Part shown: positions 14,356-33,254 of the stretch, in pieces
Position numbering within the stretch: position 1 is the first letter of the stretch
Layout of the letters: the number at the start of each line of letters is the position of its first letter
Translations under genes and position numbers: made by a program
DNA from: Lepidodermella squamata
Taxonomy: Eukaryota > Animalia > Gastrotricha
Assembly: GCA_047495785.1 (NCBI GenBank)
Contig: JBLDXI010000054.1
Location: 806,001-870,000, forward strand
Direction: 5' to 3'
DNA: 64,000 nt
Notes under the pieces: generated by a model
Seen by the model: only the letters and a program-made list of their open reading frames with translations
Told to the model about the DNA's origin: nothing
The model's database searches: none

Positions 14356-17300
14356 GCTTTGAATATAATAACTTGAACTCCAGCAACTTTTTTGTTTCAA
14401 GATTGCACCATGAACTATATATAAGAGAGATCTACGTCAGCGGCCAGAAACCTGGAACACCTGGACACACAGGAGCGTGATAATAATCCAAGTCTCCGGG
14501 CGGCCTATGTTCAAAAATATTGTCTCCAACTAATTTCGGACGTTTATAATATTTGAAAGCTATATCACTACGACGTCTATCGCCACATTTTCTGCCGAAT
14601 TTCGTCGCAGACGTTATAGGTGCATGGGATAAGCGTGATTAGGCAGGATAGCCCAAAATTAGGTTTGACTCATTAATTCTCAGTTCATTTGTTATTATTA
14701 TTATTATTTTTAGTAGTATTAGTATGCGTCTCGTCGCTGGCTGTATGTGACCACGAAAAGTAATTCGTCGCAGTATTTGGTACAGTGATAACTGAGACCC
14801 ACCGGGCGCAGATCAACTGAAGCCTTACATCCTCGATAGTTCCATTCTTTAATCAAATGAAGATAGCATCGAAATTGTGAAATTGACCGTTGGGTGTGGG
14901 GCTACCTGTACGGATTTTGTGCGACCTGTACGAATCAAGTCGCTCTCCCTCGCCAGCCATCGCCCGACCTACCTTGATGCCAAGTTGTTGCTCAACAGTT
15001 CCAGCGGTTGGCTGACTGTATTCCTCCATGATACGCATTGTACTGTTCATTTTTTTCCGCTTTTCCGGGTCAAAGTCCATGGTGACCTGGTTTGCTTGGT
15101 CTCAATGTCGGAAAAAGTGTCACCGCCAAGTAAGTGAAGCGGACAAGTGGCCAAGTTACCAAGTGGTGACGATGGACTTTGACCCGGAAAAGCGGACTTT
15201 TTCCTAAGTGCGAGTTCTTCCTCGACGTGAACGACCCTGTGCTAAGGTCGCGAACGAGGCTTGTGCAGCGCGAATTGGAGAAGAGTAGCATTGTCTCGAG
15301 AGACTGACAGCGAAAAATATGTGAATGGTACACATATTACCTTAGAGTCGAGAGGAAGTGAAGTTTAACTTAATGATAATCATGAAATAAGAAATAATGC
15401 GAAAGGCTGATATATCATAGCTTTTCTGCTCTGACTTACAAACAAATTTTTAAGAAATTTGAGAAGTTTACAGGCGTAGACGGATTCACTCGCCCAGTAA
15501 GGCAGATTTACCCTAGTAATAAAAATGGTGCACGCCGTGAGGCGGTCCTCGGCCATGCTTCCCCTGGTCCGCGTGACTTTGGCTGAACAGGAATCGTGAC
15601 AAGGCATGGCTCTGCCTTAGCATGGCATGGCACTGCCTGCACGGAGTCCTCTCTAAAAAGATGTGCTTAGAACCTAGTCCAGGACAGGGTCCTTGCTAGT
15701 TAAAAGTAACAAGGACCTTGTGCGGGCCCTGAGCCAAGATCTTGGCAGGATGTGATTTTTTGTGTGAGGCACGTAGATCTTGGGAAGAACTGTGTTGTGA
15801 CGGCGACCCTAGCCGAGGACCTTGTGATGAACTTGTGAGTTGTCCTTGGTGAAGTGGACTTGGAAATTTTTTTCAAATTTTTTTGTAAGTTGATTGGTTG
15901 CCGCAGTGTTTTCTTAATTATAATCGCTGCTTGCCGTATTACATGCTGGTTATAGGCATTATTTGCTATTTTGTTTTTAAATATAACACTGTGTCTATAT
16001 TTTTAACCTTGAAACACAAATCTATATCTTTTCATACTTCAAATATAGATTTGAGTATGAACTATATTTCTGATCTATATCTGAAATATAGATTCAGGTG
16101 TGTCTATATTTTTCACCTGGAAAATCTATATTTTAAATATAGATGCCCATTTCCAAGCCCAATACTTCCGAGATCTCTAAAACAGCTAATTCTAACGGAA
16201 AAACGCAGGGAAATAGTTTTCGCAACGCAATTTATTATGAAAGAAAATGGAGAAATTCAATTTTGAGAATAATTTAGGCGGGGACAGCTTGGCAGGCGGG
16301 CTGCAAAAATGGGTCGTATGAACCAGAATTTCTCAGAAAACTCCGGAAAATCGGGCAGCATTTCGTCCCCGCTAGGCATGAATTCGCAGCGATTCGCGGG
16401 TCGGATCGCGCAGAAAATCATCGAACAGGTACGGTCAGCAAGTCGCCACCGAAAGCACCGGGAAAGCTGCTCCAGAAGATCCAGCATTTGACAGCATCTA
16501 GTCCCCAACTCGCAGAAATCACCACCTGGGACTGCATCTTGCAGCACTTGGCCAGCGACAGTTCCGCGATTCCATTGCACTGGGAAAATGGATGTACCAA
16601 ACACCGTTGCAACGCGCTTGTCCGAAATCCGAAACTGAGCCATTTTTCAGCGCCCCGGAGATGAAATTCAGACGGACTGTCCTCGAGTCTTGTGCATCGC
16701 ATCCAAACGCGTGTCGTTCAAATCGAACCAGTTTCTTCAGGTTGAAAAAGCGCAAGGTTTTCGCGAACGTTGATTTCGAAGGAAGCAGGGTTGATTGGTT
16801 ATCGAAGGGTTGATGGGTTGTCGAACCATTCGGCTTGGAATGCGTCAGGGTTGCAAATCGGAGCAGAATTCTGGGAGAATTTGTTCGTGAAATTCGAGCA
16901 TAGGTTCGGACAGAGAATCGACGTTCAAAACGAAACGAAATTCGAAAGAATGAGAAAAAATGAGCGAAAATGAATAGCAAGCCAGTTTTAGATGAAATTT
17001 TAAGTTGGATTTTTTATTTTCTATTACTACTGCGTTGCGAAAAATATAGACACCGTGTAATATTTTACGATACAACATTCGTAGAAACCTATATTTTCGT
17101 GAAGCACTCGTATAGATCTCGTAAAACTCATTCACCTCGTGAAATCTCGTCTCCACTCGCCTACCGGCTCGTTCCGCCTCGATTTCACTCGTTTCATTCG
17201 TTTTACTCGATCTATATTTCGTGCTTCACTCAAATATAGATTCCTACTCATGTTATATCATACAAATATAAATTAAAAAATAGATGTTATCGATGGAGCG

Positions 17301-18079: not shown

Positions 18080-18422
18080 GTGCTAAAATATAGGCGCATT
18101 ACTTATAGTATACAGTCTCAATGTCTGCGTATGCAGTAGCGTGTGGTGTTTTCTTAAAGTCTCTAAAGACTTTGTTTTACTGATTTTTTTTTACTTCATA
18201 TCTGTAGCCTGTGGTTATATAATAGGTAAAATTATTACATTTTTATCAGGTACTGAAGACAAATGCAGCTGAAAGCGCTCTTTTGTTATTTATCAATGTA
18301 CCTATTTCTACTCTGCACTATTTTATTTCATTGTTATTGTTTGACTTTTATAGTGTTGTTATTTTGCCCGTAATTTACGACGATAACGGCGACCATCTAC
18401 GTACTTGTGGATTTTTGCTATA

Positions 18423-18865
18423 ATGGGGAAACGCAGGAAGTCAGGAGGTCGTATAGTCAGAAAACCTGGCGACGATAAAGCTGCTGAAAAACCGTTAATA
18501 CAGCGCAAAGTTCGACGACGACGCGGCGCGGAAGTGTTTTCATCTGTTGTGTCTAGCGACAAAGAGGAGGGCTCTGGCAGTTCGAGTGAATTGACGGCAA
18601 AAATTGTTAATCCTACTAGACCTCGACCAAAATCATCTACCGTTCGATTCATGTCGACATCTAAAGTTGCTAAACCAGAAGAAGAAGAACAAGAAGATGA
18701 TGATGATGATGATGATGATGATGACGAAGATAGCGAAACTAGTTATGCGGCTGGTGGCGAAGAGTCTGCGTTGACGCTGTCGTCGTTGTCGTCGTCAAGA
18801 CTTACGACTCAGCCGTCGATGCTGGCGTCAGGCCTATTTACGCTCAGTGTGTGTGGTCAAGGTGG

Positions 18866-18914
<49 letters not shown>

Positions 18915-21900
18915 TTAGGACGAGGCGACGGCGAAGAAGAAGAAGAAGAAGAAGAAGAGGAAGAAATGCTAGAGCGGGGCGACGACGAAGGCGGAGATGA
19001 CAGCCGCCCCCCATCAGGTGCTGTAGAGCCGATGACCGTCGATTCATATGCTGCGGAAGAAGAAGAAGACCAAGCGGTAGCTCAACGCGATACAGCCGAT
19101 TTGTCAACTGAAAACAGTTCAATGGTTGTTATGAACCGGAATGATGATGATAATGATGATGATGAAGGAGATGATTCGGGCGATTCAGCCGTATTATCAG
19201 ATCGACTTGTTGTTGTTAATCAACCGGGGACACTTAATATCGTGGGAGCTGGCAGTTCGAGTGAAGACTCCTCGGCAGATGAACAAGACAGCAGGCTGAC
19301 AGATATCGGCCGTCCTTTGGCATACTTTCCGCTGTTCGGCAGTGACGGGGAGGAATTGAGCAGCGACGACAGTGATGTTGATCTTGATGTAAGTAATGTC
19401 GCAAATAATAGTTTCCCCCCTGAATGGATTTTTTATTCTTTGCTTTTTATTTATTCATCAATTTAAAATATGTCATTCAACGCTGAAATTTGATAGATTT
19501 GATCGCAGTTTTGGGTACCTATGTAAAATCGGGTATTTTGGTTATATTGTAGCTTAGTTGCGTAATTATTAAAACCGCTCAACCATGTCAGAGAAAGCTC
19601 ATCAGATATTGTCTCATTTCAACAAATAACTTCGCGAAACTCCGAAATTTCATCGTCACATGACTCTATCTCCATCGGCTCAAAGCAGAGCTCAGAAGAT
19701 GATCAATCGGTTGAAAATTTCTTATCACGGCAAACCTGAAGGATATAAAATTAAATGGGTCATAAGTTTTAAGAGAATTTATGCCTCTCTGTCTCGTTCG
19801 ATTAGAAACTCTCGCGAATTGATTACGTCATTCAATTGCAATCTGAACGAATTTTGCAGCAAAAGCGTTTGAGCCAGCAACTCATTCCGCTCAGTAAGGA
19901 CTTCCTCAGCTTTTTTCATAGTGAAATCAGTCATTTCAGCCACTTTGGAGTTGATGGGTTCTGTGAATATTTAAATCGCATCTTCTACTCAACTTTTGAT
20001 ATCAGCAAGAGTTGTGGTCAACTTCTCGTCGATAGTAGCCTTAATAAAGTAACCCTGACTAACTCTGACTATTTCAATCGGTTTTCGTACTAAATAAAGT
20101 CGAAATGAAATGAGTAGACCAATTCATTGCGAAAGCCTTACATGGCTGGCCAACCATGCAATATCGATTTTGAGCATCTCCTTGTGACAAAGTAGACAGG
20201 CGTCGCAAAAGGATTTTTGGCGGTGGCTACACTCGTTTCGATTCTCAGTTAGCACGACATGTTCACATGCCATTCCTAATTCCGTTGCAACTGAAGGAAT
20301 TGTTTGAAAGACAATATGGGTCCTTTTCTTGGCGCGCGCGCATCATTATTTTTTGTGTCACAAAAAATGTGGCTTTAATGATGCGTGTTGCGCCACGCGG
20401 TTGTGTGTGCGTGTGCGTCACATGACGCAAGTTGCGTCACTTGTTGTGTTCGCAATATTATATTTCTAGTAATTAGGACCACACAACAAAATAATCTGTT
20501 CATTTGATATTTATTTTTATAAGTAAAATGTTAGTGTAACTTGAATTGTATTTGTTCAAATCACTTTAGTTTTCAAAATTTAATAGAATTTCGCAACTTT
20601 TTAAATGTGAAATGTAAAAGCACCACAGTTATTCCCTAGAATTGCTGCAGTTTTGAATAGGTAGCGGCAATGATACATTTTTTCCGGCTATCTTGGTTGA
20701 TAGCAAAATTGTTTTCTTGAAAAAGTATCATTTACTATTTAACCTATTATAAAAATTATTTATTTTCGAATGTTGATAATTATTGTTGTATAGCAGAGCT
20801 AATTCATGTGTTTTTTGTGTGTAATATTTCCAGGTTGAAGATTGGTCTTCTGAGGAGGATGAGGAGGATGACGACGAAGAAGAACGGCATGACGATGGCG
20901 GTGTTGCAATTCAAGGCCAAGGTCAAGACCACCCGGCTGCACAAGTACAACAAGGAAATGATCAACCACAGCAGCAGCCGGCGAATCGATTTCCTATTCA
21001 AAATAGCTACGCCTACACGGATTTTGTTCATAAGCCGAGTGACGAATCTGACGATCCACATGACATTATGGGGCGGTTAAGGCGACTGGAAATGCAACAC
21101 AGGTTATCTCGATCAGCAATCGATGAGGTGTTGCAGATGGTTAGAGCGTATTGCCAGCCACAACTGCTGAAACACGTTCCGAAGTCATGCTACGTGTATC
21201 GGAAGCGGTTGGAACAAAGCGGGAGTCTGGTAAAGCCGTCCTTCAGAAGCTTCATGTGCCCGAAATGTTTCCGCGAGCTTGACAAAGACAGCAAATGCCC
21301 TGTTTGCAACGAGAAATTGGCGCCGTCAGCTCGGGCTGAAGTGATTGTACCATCTTTAGCGTGGCAGTTGCTCACTGTTCTCAATGATTATGTCGTTAAA
21401 AATGGCATCACTCTACAAACTTTGGGTCAACTTGGCCATTGCTTACAATTACAAGTCAGCTTCGACGGCACCCCGTTGTCAAGGCGAAACACCGGCTGCA
21501 CTGATGTGTGGCCTTTAACGGCGTCGATTGTCAACCTGCCGATTCACGCTCGATTCAAGCCCCATAATATCATCATTATGGGCTTGTGGCAAGGCCCCTG
21601 CCATCCGCCTTATAGGAAACTTATCGAGCTGTGCCTCAACAAAACGTCACGCGAATTTCGGGCTCCTAAAGTGTTCGAGTTTCAAAACGGTGTGCGCATA
21701 AATATGGGTATTTGTCTGCATTCATTGATAGCTGACCTAATAGCCAGAGCGCCGTGTTTAAACATGACTCAATTCAATGGTGAATACGGCTGCCCTTATT
21801 GCACGGTTTGCGGGGTGACAATAGAAACCGTTGGGTGGCGATATCGGTTGGTGCCAAATCTCGATCTATATTTGCGAGGACCGAGTGGCATTGATGAGAC

Positions 21901-24900
21901 GGCATTGCAAGTTGTACGGGAAGGCATTGTTTCACACTTAGGTATGCAATTTTTTATTATTTTATTTTAAATAATGATAAGTAGCTTTTGATTTTGGTAA
22001 TAAATGTTTAAATACTAGCCCGGGCTTCTAGGTTTTCAATGTCCAAAATAGGCGAAAAACTGAGCTTCTATTCGAGATAGGCTACTAAGAACAAGTAAAG
22101 GGCAACCGTTCTAACCTATTTTCGTGCTCTAAGAATATTTCTGCCTCATCGTCGCTGTAATCACTGTTATTCATAGCTCTACTTCTCCATTCGAGTCATT
22201 ATTCATCTTGAGAAGTCAGAATTCCAGTTATATTCTTGAATTTATATGAATTCATTGTAAAATTTTGATGTCGACCTTCATGTGTTTAAATTTGTGTGTG
22301 TTTTCATTTTTCAGGCATCTTCGGGTTATCTGGGTTCTACCCTGATATGGTTTTCCCTCGGGACGCCCCAGTCGAACCTATGCACTGCTTCGAAGAAGGC
22401 ACTGGTCGTCGCATGAACTCGGCCTTCCTGTTCAATGACGATATTATACCTGCTGCTTCTCGAAGAGTGATTGCGTACAAGATGAAAAACATGCATCTCC
22501 CGGTTCAGTTAATCTCGGTTCGCCTCACTGCGTTTGATGACTCAGTGTTAACCAAGTGGCGCGGCAAACACATGAAGCTGTATCTTTGCGTCATTGGATC
22601 GACTGTATTGGCGTCGGAGCTATCGGACGCCTACTTTTTGTTATTCCTATCATTTCAACTCGCTTTCCGCATGCTGCTGGATTTTAACGAACAGGATGTT
22701 GAAGAGAAGCAATTTGCTATCACTAGCAGCCAGACGCTGTTGAATCGCTACGTCAACGCGATGCATCAACTACTGGGTGGCGACGAAGTCCTCATGTTCA
22801 ACCTGCATCAAGCCTTGCACCTTCCAGCGTGTGCTCAGCAGTTCGGGAATGTTGGTAATATTTCGGCTTACAGCTTCGAAGGATTCCTTGCCCGACTGAA
22901 ACAAGAATTCAAAGGTAGGAAAATTATCCTGCTTCTTTTTTTCAAAATTGTTAAATCTAGACTTCTGGACTAGTATTCTTTTGAAATTATTGCTTTCGGA
23001 AATACTTGTGAAGTTATCAGCATATATTGGAATTTGAGTTTATTTCATGTATAGATTATATCTAAATTTAATTTTAATCTAAATTAGAAGGGGAATTTGG
23101 ATTAGAGTTGTTGTTCTATCTATTCACCCTTGGGAATTAAGATTAAAGATGGACCGTTGGGAAGTAGCCTGCATAAATCCGAGTCAAAGAATGCGAGGGT
23201 TGAGTAATCGTCCACTCACCGGGCGACTTGAGAACACTTTTTTGCGCTTCTTGCCACCTCTTGCCGCGTTACGCATTTATTGACACGCAAATTCTGCGTC
23301 ACAATGTAGTCACTTCTAAGACAATTCTAAGTTGCAATGATCGCAATTCATTGAGTCTTGAACGAAGTGATGTAATTTGAGAAGCTGTCCAAGTGCAAGG
23401 GCAATTGTCGTCGCGAACATGCCTGTCCTTCGAGTGCAGTAATTCTGGGTCAATTTCAAGCAAGGACGTAATGTCCCAGTAATCCGACTATAAGGTAGGT
23501 GAGTCCGCGTTTAGGAGCGTTGACCGGGTTGGCACCAAAATTCGCAAGGTGTTCACGAATCTGGCCCGTGTGAGATCAAAGACAACGAACTTCCTTGCCT
23601 TTCAACCGTGTCTGGGCGGCATCGGCGGCAAGTTCGTACAACGCCGACGGAGAAACTAGACAGAACGTAGTATTTCTGTAGTACAATAACAATTTTGGTC
23701 AATTGGATGCCTGCATCGAGGACATCGAAATAATGGCGGGGTTCAGAAAAATCATGGGCGAAGCCGGCGAAAAACCATTCAGTTAATGAATTCCAGACCG
23801 GTGTTCTTTCGGTTAATGAGGCTCGGAGCTTCGTCTTCGGAACAAGTGACATGCCAGTCCTTCAAATGTAGTAATTCTGGGTCGATTTCATGCTAATACT
23901 TCATGGCCACAACTTTTCCAGCTCTTGCCGCCTGATGAAACGCATTTCCGCCGTTACACTTGTTTAATTGACGCCAACATCATGCACTCACGAGGTATAT
24001 ATTGTCTTGCGAGGTCAGGTCTTGCTGGAAGGCAACCCATCAGCAGCATCGGCGACTTCATCGGCGGTCAGGTTTTGCTTTCCCATCGGCCTGACTTTCA
24101 TAGAAAAAACTTCAGTTAGGGTCGTGCAGTTCTCATGACCCTTCTCAGACGGACCACGAAGGTCGCGAACCCTAGGAAACCGCAAGGTCCGCCCAATCGC
24201 AGATTCACGTCCACGGTCTGAGTCAGTGATATCGGCAGCCCGGACTGGGAAAATGGGAGCAGACTCAGGGTCGATTCAAATCACGGGATGAGTGTTGAGG
24301 CGTCAAGTACTTCAAGTATTCGATCATAGGGAAGAAGTTCCTTGTAAGAGGCCGCTTAGTCAATGGGCTAGTGAATCGCTGAGTCCCTACCAAACTTTGT
24401 TGGACGAAGTAGTGTCCCTGAGAAAGCAACTGCATTCTAAAAGTGACGAGCCATAGTAACTGTTGACGATTTGTTGAATTTGTGCGTTAATCAACGCTAG
24501 GAAAGTGCGTTAGGAAACCCGATAATGTTCAGTGATGGCCGGTTAAATTAGTAGTAACAGTAATAGTAATCTGTAGTAATAGCGTCATTTCCTAAGGCGG
24601 AATGCGCTGGGCTTGGGGTCCCGTGACCAGCGATTCTAGTCTTGGCCCCCAATCTGACCAATGTTCCGACTGTTGGCAACTCGTGAGATATGACAGCCCG
24701 GTGTAGTGGCGTGGCATCTGCCATATCTTTACAATCAATATCCACGTTCATCTGTTCGACCAAGCGTTACGTATGTAGAGCAGACGTGTCGTAAAATGTG
24801 GAACGCTTTGAAGCAGATCCAAGACCCCGGCGAATACAATTATCCTGGGAAGAATGAGACTTAAGCGTAGTTGGTTGGAAAACCTGTTAGCAATGTTCCT

Positions 24901-25956
24901 GATAATACGAGTCGAAATTGGAAAAGTTCGTTGAGATTTTTTTCCCGAGATTTTTTTTGGAATTGGATGTCCAAGAAATGCCATTTTGAAGCAAGATTCT
25001 GTGCAGAACGATTTACTTGAGAAAGTTGAGAAGTATGAAAATGCGTCAATAAACGAATGGATTGAAACCTCGAGGAAAAACGCTTACGAGAAAACAGTCA
25101 TGGGGCTAAATATGTAGTCATTTTTGAGGAGGATTGGTCATTGAAATCAACGAAGCCGTCAAATTTCATTAATTAATATGGCGTTCTATTCTTTCGCAGC
25201 ATGTTTTCGCCTGCTCACATTTTACAATTGACGTACATTTAATTAGGTACGCGTGGTCAAATCGGGCAGATGTTGGAAAATCACCACTATCATCAGCTGA
25301 TGACTCCGCGCATAGTTGGCGACGACGACGCAACTACTGGGTCGAATAGAGTCATTAGACTATCAGCCGCTTACCAAACGGTTCTTCGTGCTGTGTTGCC
25401 CGTCACTGTTGACAAATGCAAAATATACACATCGTGCCGTTATCGTCATCAGCGATACGATGGCTGTTGGCTTCACCATGGCGCAACTCGAAAGCTGCCT
25501 CGTTCATTTTCAATCGAAGCGTTGATTGGCGATCAATTGCGGCCGGTGGAAATGTGTTGCTTCATTCAACTGCCAAATCAAATTCGCAATGAACCAGTAG
25601 CTGACCCAGAGAAGCTGCTCGTTGTATGCCGACTTCTGAAATACAATCGCGCTACCCCGGGAGTTGTCCTCGAGCGATTTCGCTCTATTAGCGCTACTCC
25701 AGTCAGCGATCTAGCGCCCAACGTCGCCGAAATGGTGAACGAAATGAGGCCTATCATTGACAGCGAGCTGGCTAAGCGAATTCTCAAGTCGTACCGCATC
25801 GATGATTTCAGCTTTGAGGACAAAATGTTGAAGAACAGCTACACTCTTCTCGCCATGTCACAGCTTCGAAGACGGCTCATCCTAATACCGTCAACTAAGC
25901 CAGTCGATAAACAATTTGACGGCGTCCCTTGGAATGTCGGTGTAGACTTGTATTGA
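18423..25956 (+). CDS. CACTA/EnSpm-family DDE transposase, ~1127 aa; exons 18423-19388, 20834-21941, 22315-22914, 25247-25956
   Basis: All four exons join in frame through GT-AG sites (phases 0,1,1; 3384 nt). Motifs: CPKC...CPVC zinc ribbon, SFDG (D1), VWPL, IADLIARA..NMTQFNGEYGCPYC (D2), EPMH, FNLHQALH, SAYSFE (E), KG|TRG across the last intron; long Asp/Glu-rich N-terminus. Confidence 0.9.
18676..18966 (+). repeat. Coding (GAT)n/(GAA)n trinucleotide tracts (poly-Asp/poly-Glu) in transposase exon 1
   Basis: Pure GAT runs at ~18696-18723 and ~18867-18911 and a GAA run at ~18933-18965. Confidence 0.9.
23240..24763 (-). pseudogene. Decayed ankyrin-repeat gene fragments, antisense, inside transposase intron 3
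   Basis: Minus-strand translations: NVDIDCKDMADATPLHRAVISHELPTVGTLVRLGA (24763-24640); GGNAFHQAARAGKVVAMKY*HEIDPELLHLKD (23965-23850); LLEIDPELLHSKD...(frameshift)PLHL (23490-23385); AARGGK (~23280-23250). Confidence 0.75.
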
Positions 25957-27734
25957 TGTTGGAAAACTGGCCGCTGGAATTCAGCGTACATGGAAGCATG
26001 ACTACTCACTACGATATTTGAAAGTATGTCGCAGCTATTTACCTTTATTTTTTTGCTCGCAAATATTTTGACGAATTTGGGCCAAATTTCCGTTCAGTTA
26101 AGGTTCAAATTTCCCACATAAATGTCATCGGGAGGCCCATGGGCAATGTCAAGCTCTCTTTTATTTATGTTTTTCCCACGAATATTGCTTACAGCCAGCG
26201 AATTTTAACCTGGGGTTGTAGTCACCCTACAGGATTTTTAAATATAGGGTGCCAGGAAAAGATGCCTTTGGGCTCTAATGGATGCTCCAAATATAGACAT
26301 CCATGAGCAGGAGTCGGTTTACTACAGCGTCTTGATATTGGAAATGGTGTACAGTAATGAATCGCAACAAATTAGTGGGAGAGATGGAGAGACCGGGACA
26401 AACAGGAACAGGACTTCTGAGCAAGTGATGCTACGGATAGGTTACAAATCGAGTGATCCTTGTCAACTCGCACAGCCATGGAGTCGTTGAGAATTTTTTC
26501 CTAGCTTCGGAATTGAATGTCGAAATGGGTCAAGTCGAAGTAATGCCATTTTGAAGCCTGATTCTGAACCGAAAGATTTAGTTAAATTGAGAAGTATGGA
26601 AATGCATCAATAAACGAGTCGATTGAAAACTCGAACAATCCAGCTGCTAGTGTTGCACCTCTGATTTCAGAAAAGACAAGTAACTGTCCTGCCACCGTTC
26701 TTACCCACCTTGAAGAGCTGAAAGACCCCCCCAAATAAAAGTAAATAGAGTCGATAAACGCGTGATCAATGTGGAGCAAACATGCCGAAGAATGATGAAC
26801 GTCTTGAAAATTTAGTTTAATTGATAAGTATTGACAACAAGACTATGACTGATTTGCCTTAATGGATTTCAAGATGAGATCGCAGAAACGGGACGAGAGT
26901 GATACATCGACTTTCTGGAGACAGCGATCTGATCGCGGGGTTTGGGTAAAACCCTTACGGCAGCAATGGCTACCTGGTGCCTTGTCTAAGTAACAGTATG
27001 GGCCTCAACATATGAAGTTGTAGTCTCAGTGGACAGTAGAAATGTATTATGAGTCTTGTATTCCGAGCCAAATTGCCGCGTAAATGTATTTCACTTTTGT
27101 CACAATTTGATTTTCCTGATTAATTATTGTTATTTTCTAATTACTATTTTAGGCATCGGAAATGAAAACGGGCTCTCTATGCCTATTCGACTTCTTCAGT
27201 CTTCAGTCTTCAGTTCAGTCTTCAGTTTCGACGCAACAACTGCATCGCGTGGGGTATACAGGTTTGCCAATCGAACTTTGCATGTTCATTAATTCTTATT
27301 GCTGTCAATTCTAAAATTTTAACACTTGTAACATTCCATTTCAGCCCTTCGAAGCTGTTGTCGATTGAAACTCGTGCGACCACTTGAAATTTGCTCATCC
27401 ATTGACTGTTCCAGATTCCAGACGTCCGGCTCATGAAACTTCCGCAGCCATCTATATTGGGCGGAAACCTTTCAATTTTCTAATTGATCGATTTAAATGA
27501 ATAACTGTCTATGAATTCGCTGAGAAATTTCTGTTGTCTGTCTTTGATTGCGAAATTGTGTAACAAAACGGTTTTAAGGTGGATGTTACCTTACTTTTTT
27601 ATTTTCATGAGAGTTCCGCTTTTATTGATTCTTCTATCTGCTACATGCCACTTTTGTGCTCCATGTTTCTCTCGCAATAAAACATTATTATTTGCTTAAA
27701 AATGATTTGTTTAGATTTATTCGTATTACCTAAG

Positions 27735-30700
27735 ATGCCTCTGTCACCAGCAGACGAGAAGCGTCTTTTGAAGATGAGCGAAGACGTGAGTCCTTGCTTT
27801 ATTTCACACAGCTTCTGCTTTTTTCGGGCAACTATAATTTTGCGGAATAAGTAGCATCTTTTGACGCCTTGTTATTTCTTCCTCAGTTGACATCCCAGAC
27901 ACTAATTGGCACCTTTGCGACGTGAAAGCTTTTAAGAATATTAGCCGCTAGGTGTCCGCCTGAGCTTTAACATAAAACCCGATTATCACTCCGCAAACAC
28001 AACATGCAACATCGGATTATAAATAAGAAAAAGCTATTTTTTCCGCAACGTACCCGTTTCCATCAAATTGTTTTTTTCTCAATTGTTTTCCTTGCTAACA
28101 TTCTCAGGAACGAAATACCGGGCTACCTGCATAATCTTCATCTTGTAAGTGAGATCTTGAATATCTTTATTATCTTGCGCATGTAAGACGCCATTATTTA
28201 ATTAACAAGCGCTTAAATTTGAAGGTAACTGCTATTGTTGTATCTCTAATTTCAGAGAAGACAAGTTACGGTTCTGAACACCGTTCTTACCCAACTGCAA
28301 GAGCTGAGAGATCACCTCGAAAAAAAATTGACAAAAGTCGATCAACGCGTGACGAACGTTGAAGCGACGTGCCGAAAAATGTTAAATGCGTTGAAAGAGA
28401 TTCAAGCGAAAGCCGCCCCCGGTGAATACAATTATCCGGGAAAGGACGAAACATACGTAAGTTTCATCACAGAATCGACCTTTCTTGGCATGTTATGATA
28501 TTTCTTCTAGTCTATTACTTCCATGATAACCGGCGAAGATGTTGAAATAATGTCCGGCTTCAGAAAGCTCATCGGTGAAGCGGGCGATAAAAACCCATCA
28601 TTAGCTCGTCTTGTCGGCTGGGTCGCCGTCCAAAGCCATGTTTTTCCTGTAAATACTCTCCTTTTCTTGCAAATTTTCTATCATTTCATTGCCTATTGTA
28701 ATTGCAGACTGCATACTTCGTGGACCATGTCCTCGAAGTGAGGCGTGAAGGCGGCACAAACCGCCTGCCCACGCCTGAGGATTTGACGAATCAAATTCTA
28801 GGCAAGCAAATACGTTAAAATGCCTAATCACCGTCATAATACGGCGTTCCATGTTTCGCAGAATGTTTTCGCCTTCTTACGGGCATCGAAGAAGGCAGCG
28901 CTGAAGCTTCAACTCTGCATGCCAAACTCAACGACCTCTTCCGGCAACTCGGGACTGACCAAGCCGGTCGAAAGAGAGATAAGAAGGCTATTGACAAATA
29001 CTTACTTGATTTGTCACGGAGGCACCCGTCTACCTGGGGCCCCGTGTCAAAAAAGCTAATTATCGCGCGTGGCCTGCGTAAAGTGGAAGAAGGTTGTTAT
29101 TACAATTTTACCTACCTTTTCTTCATGATATGTATTTTGACTTCAAGTTATGCAGCTCGAAGCTGAAAGTCAGCTCGAAGACCCTGAACCTCAGCCTGAA
29201 CCTCAACGTAATATTTGACATCATTTAGTATTATAAAATTAATCCGCTGTTTTTAGATCGAGCTCCGAAAATTATTTACGGGCAGAAGAAGGCCCAAGGT
29301 AATAAGCAAATTAGCTAACGATCTTACCTGTTTATGTTTCAATTTTATGCCTATACTAGTCATGCAAGAAGACACCGAAGAAGATGTCGAAGCCGAAGAA
29401 GAGCCTGAAGAAGATTTCGAGCCCGAAGAAGAGCCCGAAGAAGATGTCGAGCCCGAAGAAGAGCCCGAAGAAGAGCCCGAAGAAGAGCCCGATGAAGAGC
29501 CCGAAGAACAGCCCGAAGAACAGCGCGAAGAAGACGTCGAGCCGGAAGAAGATGTCGAGCCCGAACAACATGTCAACGTCGAAAAGCACGTCCAGGCCGA
29601 CCAAGACGACCACGAGCAAGGCCGTCTCCAAGATAGGATGGAGGAAAACGAATCTCGCCGCAGTTCTCGCAGTTCACAGCAAGGCATGGACGTTGACAAT
29701 GTCGGCGTCCATATTGATCAAGGGCAGGAAGAGGATGGTGAAGGTGAAGGTGATGTCGGGCGGTCTGGCGATCACGTTGCTCAACACCTAGCACCCGATG
29801 ACGGCAGCCATCCGGTGGTTACCGGCAGTCTACCGTACAGTCAAAGCCGCGACCCAACACCATCGATTGCAACGGCTGTAGACTCGTCGTGTAACGCTGA
29901 CGATACGAGGGGGGCTATGGGCCACGGCTACGTAGACTACGCAGCACGTCTCGATCAAGGGGAAGACGTTCCGCGTAAGAGGCCGCTTAGCCAATGGGCT
30001 AGCGAATCGCCAAATCTTATGCAAAGTCTGCTTGACGAAATAGCGGCCCTCAAAAAACAAGTGCAGTCGAAAAGTCACGAGCCCAGCGATGAGCGGGGTT
30101 CTAACATTAGCGACAAGCCTGTAGCTAACCGCGACATCGGCGACAACTACAACGCCTCGAGCAGCACCAAGCCGGTTGCGAACACGCGTGTCACCAGCGA
30201 CAACACCAGCAGCGCCACCAGCGACAAGCCTGCGGCAAAATCCCGCCCCACCAGCGATCAGCCCGGCGCCGCCACCAGCAACAAGCCTGCACAGAAGCCT
30301 CGCGTTACCAGCGACAAAACCGGCGTCGACACCGGTGTCTACATGAGCGCTAAGCCTGACTCCATGTCCCGCGCCAACAGCAGCGGCGCCAAGATCGGAG
30401 TCGCGCCCCGCACCAACACGGGCGGCAACACTAGCGTGAAGATCGTGGTGACGCCGCTCGCCAAACCGGGCGGCAACACGGGCGTCAAGGCCGGCGGCAA
30501 CACCGGCGCCAAGATCGCAGTGACGCCGCGCGTCAACACGGGCGGCAACACGGGCGGCAACACCGGCGTCAACACGGGCGTCAAGACCGGCGGCAACACG
30601 GGCGTCACGACCGGCAGCAACACCGGCGCCAGGATCACATCGACGCCCCGCGCCAATGCCAGCCAAAGCGCTAAGTTCGGTGCGAATACGTCGGCTAAAA

Positions 30701-30738
30701 AGGACTCTCGCCCACGTGTAACCAGCAGCCAGAGATGA
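27735..30738 (+). CDS. Transposon accessory protein (ORF2): coiled coil + BEN-like domain + EEEP acidic repeats + GGNT/NTG repeats, ~755 aa, 10 exons
   Basis: Exons 27735-27785, 27887-27921, 28108-28144, 28256-28456, 28511-28648, 28708-28801, 28862-29092, 29148-29207, 29257-29298 and 29360-30738 join in frame (2268 nt), using one GC-AG intron. Heptad segment LTQLQELRDHLEKKLTKVDQRVTNVE; BEN-like pattern LARLV...VFP..YFVDHVL...GG.NRLPTP..L.NQI...AKLNDLFRQ judged by eye. First two exons are least certain. Confidence 0.72.
29376..29566 (+). repeat. Coding 12-bp minisatellite GAAGAAGAGCCC (EEEP)n
   Basis: Tandem GAAGAAGAGCCC / GAAGAAGATGTCGAGCCC units. Confidence 0.9.
30410..30632 (+). repeat. 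Coding 12-bp GGCGGCAACACG-type repeats (GGNT/GVNT)
   Basis: Repeated GGCGGCAACAC(G/C) and GGCGTCAA units in the last ORF2 exon. Confidence 0.85.
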
Positions 30739-32003: not shown

Positions 32004-33254
32004 ACACCACGTTTTCTGACATTCAAATCATTTTCCTTTTCTCACCTCATTTATGTTTCAACTCGCATTTTTCTATTCTTTTTCATATAGGTGATGTTAA
32101 CAAAGATTGAATTGAAATGAAATGAAAATTTAACGGGTTTTATCGATGAAAATGTGGTTTGTTCACTTTCGTTCATGATCGGCCTTCACTCGAGTGATCA
32201 CTCGTCGTCGTTACCTGTTCACTTACTTCTTCCTCACTTCCTTACTTCAGGATATCTCCGGTCTTCGGTGATTTCGTATTTCGTAAGTCGTAGTAAACAA
32301 GTTTTCATTTACCGGCTCGCACCGTTGGCTAGGGAAAGAATGGCTGCATGGTGAACAACTGCTCTGGAACAATCGGCGAGCGGTGTTTGTGTGCCTCTGC
32401 GTCTGCTTTTTCCTCTCCGTTTCTCTCTCCTTCTTTCTCTCTCTCTCTCTTTCGATGTCTCAATCTTTCGAGATCGAGATCGAGAGTGAGATCAAGAAGT
32501 AAAGAGAGACACGGCGAGGAAAACGCGCAGACGCAAAGCCACACAAACACCACTCGCTGGTTGTTCCAAGAGCAGCGGCCCACCATCCGCCCTTCCTACC
32601 CTGGCCGGTGCGGGCCGGTAAAAAATTTTTCGCCGATCTTTTCCCATTCCTGCCACGATATCAGCCTGTTCCTGCGAGGATCAGTCAAGTTTACCAGCAT
32701 CGTCAACTACTCCTGGCATGACAACTTGCAACTGTAGTTCCAACCTTCCACCTTCCTTCGTAGATTTTCCCCAAGTTTCTCTCAACATCCCACACATGAC
32801 CTTACCAGGATACTTAGCCACCAAAAGTGAGCAAGACCTTAGTACGCTCCTGACCCAACACCGTGCGAGGTGCGGGACAACTTATTGTCAAATTCAATTC
32901 GGACCAGCTCATGCCGCATGACATGCGTCCTTGCTCATTCCTTACACTTCTCCTCCCAAGGCATTTTTTATCACTAGGGTAGGGCTAATGTTGGTCAAGG
33001 ACAATTAGCTCCTCATGATAGGCCTATGGGTAGATCTCTCCTTGGAATTGCCCTTGGGATATAACATGCTAAAGAACTCAAACAGTTTCTTACTCCGTTC
33101 TTTGACGGACAGTACGCGTCTTGTCTGTTTTTAATGCGAGTAACAGCGCATTCAGAAAATGTGAGTCCGACCGTGGCCTAGATGCGAAATGTTAATGCGT
33201 CGAGGACAGTATACGCATCATGTCGCATTATTGTATTACGCTCTAAAAGCACAC

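Follow-up and report, generated by a model that had tools for sequence, protein, structure and literature searches.

Coding sequence within a transposon intron is known from the maize element En/Spm, where the TnpD reading frames lie inside an intron of the tnpA transcript. The En/Spm intron sequence is intact and is used via alternative splicing. Short fragments of foreign genes are also found in TIR DNA transposons of the Pack-TIR and Pack-CACTA kind, which arise by gap filling (Tan et al. 2021, PMC8277862; Catoni et al. 2019, PMC6379663). In animals, this gap filling is marked by template switching, a bias towards nearby templates and element copies that lack the filler (PMC8277862). Such Pack-TYPE elements are non-autonomous, and their fragments derive from host genes. 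DNA transposons rearranged by abortive gap repair with template switching (mosquito Tc1/mariner to MITEs, PMC3814204) and complex rearrangements mediated by microhomology (MMBIR model, PMC2621351) consist of shuffled, discontinuous copies of their own family with variable breakpoints, and they usually lose their coding capacity. Finally, nested transposon insertions may use an intron as a safe landing place.

The locus described here, intron 3 of a transposase gene in the window (the whole 64-kb stretch of Lepidodermella squamata DNA that was analysed), resembles each of these systems in part. As in En/Spm, a CACTA-type element holds other coding sequence of the element in a large intron; in contrast to En/Spm, the pieces are fragmentary and out of order, and some lie in antisense. 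As in Pack-TIR and Pack-CACTA elements, the filler lacks TIRs and TSDs, copies without filler exist, and the templates appear to be of the same family or nearby. Unlike Pack-TYPE elements, however, this carrier has its own apparently intact transposase, with the filler placed in an intron of that gene, and much of the filler is transposon-derived, probably from the ORF2 of a sister element. The shuffled and discontinuous family copies, whose breakpoints vary from one element copy to another, recall abortive gap repair, although the exons are spared here. With nested insertions the locus shares the intron as a landing place and the repeats in introns 2 and 3 and the 3' flank, whereas its blocks have neither recognisable ends nor a target duplication. 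The first-pass annotation regarded gene capture as mostly a matter of plants and non-autonomous elements, a premise that is dated, as 370 Pack-TIRs have been reported in 100 animal genomes (PMC8277862). Its central description of intron 3, a patchwork in which short fragments of genes occupy either strand, is borne out: five plus-strand ORF2-like pieces lie among minus-strand ankyrin sequence.

The host element is bounded by probable terminal inverted repeats of 17-18 nt and encodes the transposase. The features are listed with positions in the window:

15511-15528, plus strand: 5' terminal inverted repeat of the host element, CCCTAGTRATAAAAA
32962-32979, minus strand: 3' terminal inverted repeat of the host element; the end reads ...CACTAGGG
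22315-22914 (start approximate), plus strand: transposase exon 3, an open frame aligned to relatives through its last residue
22915-25246, plus strand: intron 3 of the CMC transposase gene, GT..AG, phase 1, 2332 nt
25247-25956, plus strand: transposase exon 4, the last coding exon seen, an open frame whose start aligns to P0001 358-443

The two element ends are the sole occurrences of CCCTAGTRATAAAAA, and two matches were obtained in none of 100 shuffles. TA stands beside both ends, a 2-nt match that is weak as evidence of a target duplication. A second copy of the element is absent from the 64-kb window. Exon 2 of the transposase shows a weak Pfam match to DUF1258 (9e-6, under the cut-off). 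A HMMER search with exon 2 returned 1227 relatives at E<=1e-3, with a best identity of 35%; these relatives bear Transposase_21, DUF1258 and DUF4218, and they can also be aligned with exons 3 and 4. The predicted transposase, with a Transposase_21/DUF1258 region followed by a DUF4218-type one, places the host element among the CMC (CACTA/Mirage/Chapaev) DNA transposons. Exons 2-4 are open frames that can be aligned to full-length relatives, and the gene is apparently intact, as judged from exons searched singly by reference. Exon 4 queries in a word-based protein search and a metagenome scan yielded no sister copies, and exact look-ups of two window ORFs gave no match.

Judged from its sequence, 22915-25246 is a real intron, because its removal restores a conserved CMC transposase motif, F-x-G-T-R-G...Q-M. 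The last residues of exon 3 are ...LKQEFK; a G encoded by the split codon follows, and then TRGQIGQMLEN from the beginning of exon 4. Contiguous relatives read ...LKRLFHGTRGMITQMLTN and ...KQAFNGTRGQASQIV across the same junction. The length of 2332 nt is far outside the local norm, because the introns of ORF2 measure only 53-60 nt, which makes intron 3 about 40 times as long as the element's other introns. Other repeats are present as well in two introns of the transposase gene, 2 and 3, and in its 3' flank. An assembly artefact was judged unlikely, with error-free contigs covering 23592-24050, 24201-24417 and 24735-25272 in a contig run that may be the assembly's own source.

The five plus-strand pieces of the ORF2 locus in intron 3 are 45-155 nt long, 70-84% identical to their counterparts and in sense orientation to ORF2. 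Pieces and counterparts are as follows:

23715-23780, plus strand: piece b, copy from ORF2 exon b, CIEDIEIMAGFRKIMGEAGEK; matches 28535-28591
24320-24452, plus strand: piece f, internal part of the large ORF2 exon, KRPLSQWASES...; matches 29951-30083
24756-24905, plus strand: piece a, the 3' half of ORF2 exon a with the donor site and most of the next 53-nt intron; matches 28338-28503
24928-25073, plus strand: piece X, a non-coding stretch, 75-82% to 26484-26634
25174-25218, plus strand: piece d, the acceptor and first 19 nt of ORF2 exon d, 84% to 28837-28880
26484-26815, plus strand: decayed duplicate of stretch X, acceptor and ORF2 exon a; 26644-26809 is 76% to 28229-28396, with frameshifts
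28256-28457, plus strand: ORF2 exon a (coiled-coil), counterpart of piece a, an open frame between ag and gtaagt with weak coiled-coil-type Pfam matches
28511-28648, plus strand: ORF2 exon b, counterpart of piece b
28864-29094, plus strand: ORF2 exon d, counterpart of piece d
29347-30738, plus strand: large ORF2 exon, counterpart of piece f, a 463-codon ORF

Pieces b, f and a had already been paired with ORF2 in the first-pass annotation, and all three pairs are real. Piece b (23718-23774 against 28535-28591) agrees in 14 of 19 amino acids and in 81% of its nucleotides (E 1.6e-6). Piece f is 78% identical to 29951-30083 over 133 nt (E 1.6e-25) and retains 44 codons without a stop or gap, and piece a (24756-24863 against 28338-28455) is 70% identical over 118 nt (E 3e-9). 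Pieces X and d are new; the former matches 26484-26634 at 75% (E 6e-25), a counterpart located upstream of the decayed exon a duplicate. A BEN domain received no Pfam support in single ORF2 exons. The order is shuffled, as had been proposed: the pieces are not colinear with the ORF2 locus, because they run b, f, a, X, d in the intron and X, a, b, d, f downstream. Exact matches between intron 3 and the remainder of the window extend to 16 nt at most, with none of 17 nt or more to ORF2.

On the evidence of their sequence, the ORF2-like pieces are copies of genomic DNA, because intron/exon borders are included; a retrocopy origin is ruled out by the pieces that cross these borders. The earlier claim that they come from the element's own ORF2 is doubtful. 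Differences between the pieces and ORF2 fall 25:17:47 by codon position (pN 0.20, pS 0.62), a third-position bias obtained in a test that is itself biased, since only conserved pieces can be detected. Copies at least 80% identical to the pieces occur elsewhere in the genome, nearer than the element's own ORF2 (70-78%). Furthermore, ORF2 has three extra codons at a site that, in a closer copy of piece a found in contigs, is occupied by a 9-nt stretch in frame. Because of these three observations, the source is probably the ORF2 of a diverged sister element rather than the element's own; a copy taken long ago from the element's own ORF2, which later evolved under constraint, would fit only a little worse.

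Ankyrin remains on the minus strand amount to about 680 nt in total, scattered through 1.5 kb:

23243-23650, minus strand: ankyrin-like stretch 1, about 3-4 repeats, decayed (stops, frameshifts), from a three-frame reading
23849-23979, minus strand: ankyrin piece 2, with one in-frame stop; 23896-23979 matches ankyrin-1/2 (PDB phmmer, E 0.006) and designed ANK proteins
24551-24766, minus strand: ankyrin piece 3, 72 open codons, matching hundreds of ANK chains (PDB phmmer)

At least four ankyrin fragments were counted in the first-pass annotation; sequence search recovers two ankyrin pieces, the others being recognised solely from a repeat within the intron and on visual reading. Piece 3 reaches phmmer E-values down to 1e-13 (ASB11, 4e-6), with Pfam Ank_2 at only 0.055 and Atlas neighbours that are all Ank. 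A match to the 33-residue ANK repeat is significant for 24551-24766 and for 23896-23979, and not for 23302-23575 alone; queries within stretch 1 (23459-23575, 23302-23487) found no match in PDB or Pfam. Beside the reading by eye, stretch 1 is tied to ankyrin by a 60-nt repeat at 80% identity (23417-23476 and 23849-23908, 'EIDPELLH.KD'). This repeat was the only significant one when a tandem-unit origin of the fill, with a period of about 430 nt, was considered and rejected. Ankyrin piece 3 adjoins the ORF2-like piece a, which starts at 24756, with an overlap of about 10 nt; the abutment described in the first-pass annotation is thus confirmed. The alternation of ankyrin and ORF2-like pieces is not statistically notable, because, of the 56 possible orders of three ankyrin and five ORF2 pieces, 20 keep all the ankyrin pieces apart from one another. 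Relaxed BLAST settings revealed no further pieces in intron 3, of which about 1.1 kb is without explained origin after the piece searches.

The content of the intron varies among family copies, as had been anticipated, with contigs that lack 23209-24476 or 24550-25242. The intron can accordingly be divided into a base part and two blocks:

22915-23208, plus strand: base part of the intron, common to a paralogous copy (paralog contig)
23209-24476, no strand assigned: block I, a 1268-nt indel relative to the paralog, with ankyrin pieces 1 and 2 and ORF2-like pieces b and f; joint 23208->24477
24550-25242, no strand assigned: block II, a 693-nt indel relative to other copies, with ankyrin piece 3 and pieces a, X and d

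A paralog contig of 4163 nt (record 1), about 84% identical, follows 22728-23208 and then continues straight to 24477-24545. For block II, we observed the contig joints 24549->25243, 24511->25243 and 24281->25243; the evidence here is moderate, because the short sides of the joints measure just 26-30 nt. The comparison is based on one set of short contigs, some joints having a short side of only 26-44 nt, and each block may represent either an insertion here or a deletion in the other copies. Neither block has a TIR or TSD at its edges, and the terminal motif of the host element does not occur inside intron 3. No target duplication is seen at block I, because the paralog retains AAT on both sides of the joint. 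AATTAG is present at both edges of block II (24546-24551, 25241-25246), yet no letters are shared at the contig joint. The junctions between fragments are blurred, because their putative ORF2 donors are 16-30% diverged.

With moderate confidence, we favour the reading that the fill is debris of error-prone double-strand-break repair or of recombination between family copies, a passenger rather than a maintained store. Intron 3 would have grown from a short intron to 2.3 kb through the addition of blocks I and II, each formed by gap filling and template switches in error-prone repair or recombination among family copies, the kind of process that yields rearranged DNA transposons and Pack-TIRs. 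The plus-strand fill, which includes parts of exons, their borders with introns and non-coding sequence, would stem from the ORF2 locus of a diverged sister element, and the minus-strand fill from pieces of an ankyrin-repeat gene. The blocks would afterwards have been carried along with the element, presumably without effect and tolerated because the intron is spliced out. Consistent with gap filling, the corresponding site is free of filler in other family copies, and the filler is not surrounded by a TIR or TSD; the mechanism has precedents in animals (PMC8277862), among them a mosquito Tc1/mariner element (PMC3814204). The intron fill looks like an ordinary outcome of known repair processes, and nothing indicates a function.

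It is possible, though unlikely, that the blocks are debris of nested insertions, namely one or two non-autonomous derivatives of sister CMC elements with ankyrin and ORF2 remnants, whose ends were later lost by decay or deletion. Such an origin would suit fragments that are TE-family sequence in a few copies, other repeats in the same introns and 3' flank, and ORF2 pieces that are colinear inside each block (b then f in I, a then d in II); it is at odds with the lack of TIRs, TSDs and the family terminal motif and with the AAT on each side of the paralog's block I joint. The first-pass annotation had itself named a single nested insertion as the alternative to its own reading, and the block edges show no such structure.

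Somewhat less probable again is an ancestral antisense ankyrin cargo gene, perhaps with a SOCS box, that decayed within intron 3, the block-less copies being deletion derivatives. The extent of the minus-strand remains would be explained in this way. However, neither a SOCS box nor any other domain next to these remains, including downstream, has Pfam support, and sense ORF2 pieces break up the ankyrin sequence. Moreover, in one other family copy ankyrin piece 3 seemingly lies downstream of the transposase, outside the intron (contig).

A maintained archive of captured snippets, proposed in the first-pass annotation as a source of small RNAs that target host genes or related elements, or as a shield from silencing, is very improbable: ankyrin pieces in the pre-mRNA would be antisense to ankyrin mRNAs, copies of at least 80% identity exist in the genome and variation between copies is expected of an accreting store, but the ORF2-like pieces are sense and match ORF2 exactly over at most 16 nt, intron 3 contains no inverted repeat or hairpin above 21 nt and no Rfam match to structured RNAs or ribozymes, each block is missing from at least one copy, and the pieces bear stops and frameshifts without a sign of maintenance. 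It is just as hard to credit that the antisense ankyrin and sister-ORF2 pieces feed a small-RNA pathway against host ankyrin(-SOCS) genes or rival sister elements, which, if true, would give an autonomous animal transposon with self-renewing targeting fragments in a spliced-out intron.

Read as repair or recombination debris, the locus is a clear example of an apparently coding-competent animal cut-and-paste transposon in which one intron absorbs rearranged sister-element and ankyrin DNA. Rearranged intron DNA of this kind is thought to be the raw material of cargo-carrying and Pack-type elements, and a comparison of intron 3 across copies could reveal intermediate steps in cargo gain and loss. 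Summed contig depth (run X1) suggests about 3-6 copies of exon 4 at an identity of at least 80%, and the block interiors, at about 2-6 copies, are similar to it, whereas the repeats at 22001-22171 and 26209-26281 are of high copy number. For the ankyrin pieces the copy number in the genome, about 2-6, is likewise close to that of the transposase exon, and piece 3 has the highest summed depth of the intron, at about 6 copies.

The predicted third intron of the element's CMC transposase gene (22915-25246, plus strand) is flanked on both sides by open transposase coding pieces. Upstream of it, the exon at 21068-21970 (300 codons) gives a weak DUF1258 match, and an exhaustive HMMER search with it found 1227 relatives, none above 35% identity. 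Their domains, Transposase_21, DUF1258 and DUF4218, are those typical of the CACTA/Mirage/Chapaev (CMC) group. The exons were searched one by one. The alignment of exon 3 to its relatives reaches its final residue, and across the proposed splice ...LKQEFK-G-TRGQIGQMLEN corresponds to ...LKRLFHGTRGMITQMLTN, ...KNLFNGTRGIAKQMVEK and ...KQAFNGTRGQASQIV in contiguous relatives. The predicted GT..AG, phase 1 intron is thus well supported by homology, exactly where the first-pass annotation had placed it. In one relative, P0071 (1064 residues), a SET domain precedes the transposase core, which may point to a fusion or to domestication. The terminal inverted repeats of the host element (17-18 nt, at 15511 and 32979) are unique within the window. 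Mirage-type CMC elements make a 2-bp target duplication; the TA flanking both ends (15509-15510 and 32980-32981) would fit this, a 2-nt match being weak evidence.

Self-comparison of the window recovered the three ORF2 pairs reported earlier (pieces b, f and a) and two further pieces, X and d. All five are 70-84% identical to their counterparts at the locus of ORF2, the element's second gene:

23718-23774, plus strand: piece b, matches 28535-28591
24320-24452, plus strand: piece f, matches 29951-30083
24756-24863, reaching ~24905, plus strand: piece a, matches 28338-28503
24928-25073, plus strand: piece X, matches 26484-26634, non-coding
25174-25218, plus strand: piece d, matches 28837-28880, acceptor and 19 exon bases
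28256-28457: ORF2 exon a
28511-28648: ORF2 exon b
28711-28803: ORF2 exon c
28864-29094: ORF2 exon d
29347-30738: ORF2 large exon

As had been claimed, the order is shuffled, not colinear with ORF2. Piece a crosses a donor site and covers most of the next ORF2 intron (ORF2 introns measure 53-60 nt), piece d includes an acceptor and X is non-coding; the pieces are therefore copies of genomic DNA, and an mRNA origin is excluded. X and exon a also recur at 26484-26815 as a decayed, frameshifted duplicate, in which X is followed by ORF2's acceptor and its first coiled-coil exon, so that the 5' region of ORF2 is partly duplicated within the element.

On the minus strand, 24551-24766 (ankyrin piece 3) is plainly ankyrin (Atlas neighbours all Ank; Pfam alone only 0.055), and 23896-23979, in ankyrin piece 2, matches ankyrin too. 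The proposed antisense ankyrin is upheld by search for these two; 23243-23650, with no database match of its own, looks on inspection like a run of three to four decayed repeats, and a 60-nt repeat at 80% identity links it to piece 2. Stops or frameshifts interrupt every ankyrin piece except piece 3. Ankyrin-like sequence accounts for ~680 nt of the intron and ORF2-locus-like sequence for ~540 nt; the other ~1.1 kb is unmatched. That the two kinds alternate is unremarkable in itself, as the three ankyrin pieces are non-adjacent in 20 of 56 possible orders. A family-borne or host ankyrin-SOCS gene is a reasonable lead for the donor; no SOCS box was found beside the ankyrin remains.

Pieces b, f and a differ from the element's ORF2 at codon positions 1, 2 and 3 in the ratio 25:17:47, with pN 0.20 versus pS 0.62, which indicates that a good part of the divergence arose under protein constraint. 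A caveat is that only detectable, i.e. conserved, pieces enter this comparison. In contigs of the one public run covering the region (~45x), the interiors of two indel blocks, I (23209-24476) and II (24550-25242), would have ~2-6 copies at ≥80% identity by summed contig depth, closer than the element's own ORF2, and in one of these copies of piece a an in-frame 9-nt stretch stands at the very position of ORF2's three extra codons. Together, these observations point to a diverged sister subfamily's ORF2 as the likelier source; the source first suggested, the element's own ORF2 copied long ago, is a less likely alternative.

Family copies differ in both blocks, as judged from joints in short contigs, the shorter side of a joint measuring 26-69 nt. 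A paralog contig (4163 nt, ~84% identical) runs from 22728-23208 directly into 24477-24545, without block I; three others join 24549, 24511 or 24281 to 25243, four bases ahead of exon 4, without block II. Another links 26402, downstream of the transposase, to ankyrin piece 3 at 24620, and a homologue of X lies just downstream of 26402 in the window copy too, suggesting that block II may be a copy of a segment lying between both genes in sister elements. By summed depth the block interiors resemble transposase exon 4 (~3-6 copies), far under the high-copy repeats at 22001-22171 and 26209-26281, and thus seem to travel with the family.

We read the fill as passenger debris. Its two blocks of sister-element and ankyrin DNA would most likely have arisen when breaks were repaired with template switching, or when family copies recombined, and would be tolerated because splicing removes them. 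Break repair with template switching has been proposed for animal Pack-TIRs (PMC8277862), and the same kind of process for rearranged Tc1/mariner derivatives (PMC3814204); the intron would be one more case of a familiar type of event, set apart chiefly by a carrier whose transposase gene is still apparently intact. One rival reading sees the blocks as nested insertions of sister derivatives that have since decayed; terminal inverted repeats and a target duplication are missing from the edges of both blocks. Another supposes that an antisense ankyrin cargo gene is ancestral and that the other copies underwent deletions. The first-pass observation is upheld and extended here, its interpretation only in part. 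The archive of captured snippets proposed with it is a third and unlikely rival: the ORF2-like pieces lie in sense orientation relative to ORF2, the intron shares no exact match longer than 16 nt with the rest of the window, inverted repeats within the intron are ≤21 nt, an Rfam search of it gave no match, and nothing supports a role as a small-RNA source.

Elsewhere in the element, 22001-22171 in transposase intron 2 (~21943-22314) has ~17x single-copy summed contig depth with loose ends on both sides, and is probably a small high-copy repeat inserted there; 26209-26281, just past the transposase stop codon, is very high-copy (summed depth ~2270 versus 45). A 315-nt imperfect palindrome (32308-32622, 76% self-complementary) occupies the 3' subterminal region; its miRNA-precursor-like Rfam matches are all sub-threshold (best 32 bits versus a gathering score of 85). 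A second palindromic stretch (17060-17269, 70% over 212 nt) lies in the 5' part, near AT-rich 'ATCTATAT' subterminal repeats at 15979-16145. Two different open frames contain long acidic stretches of low complexity (D/E repeats), at 18405-19466 and 29347-29700.
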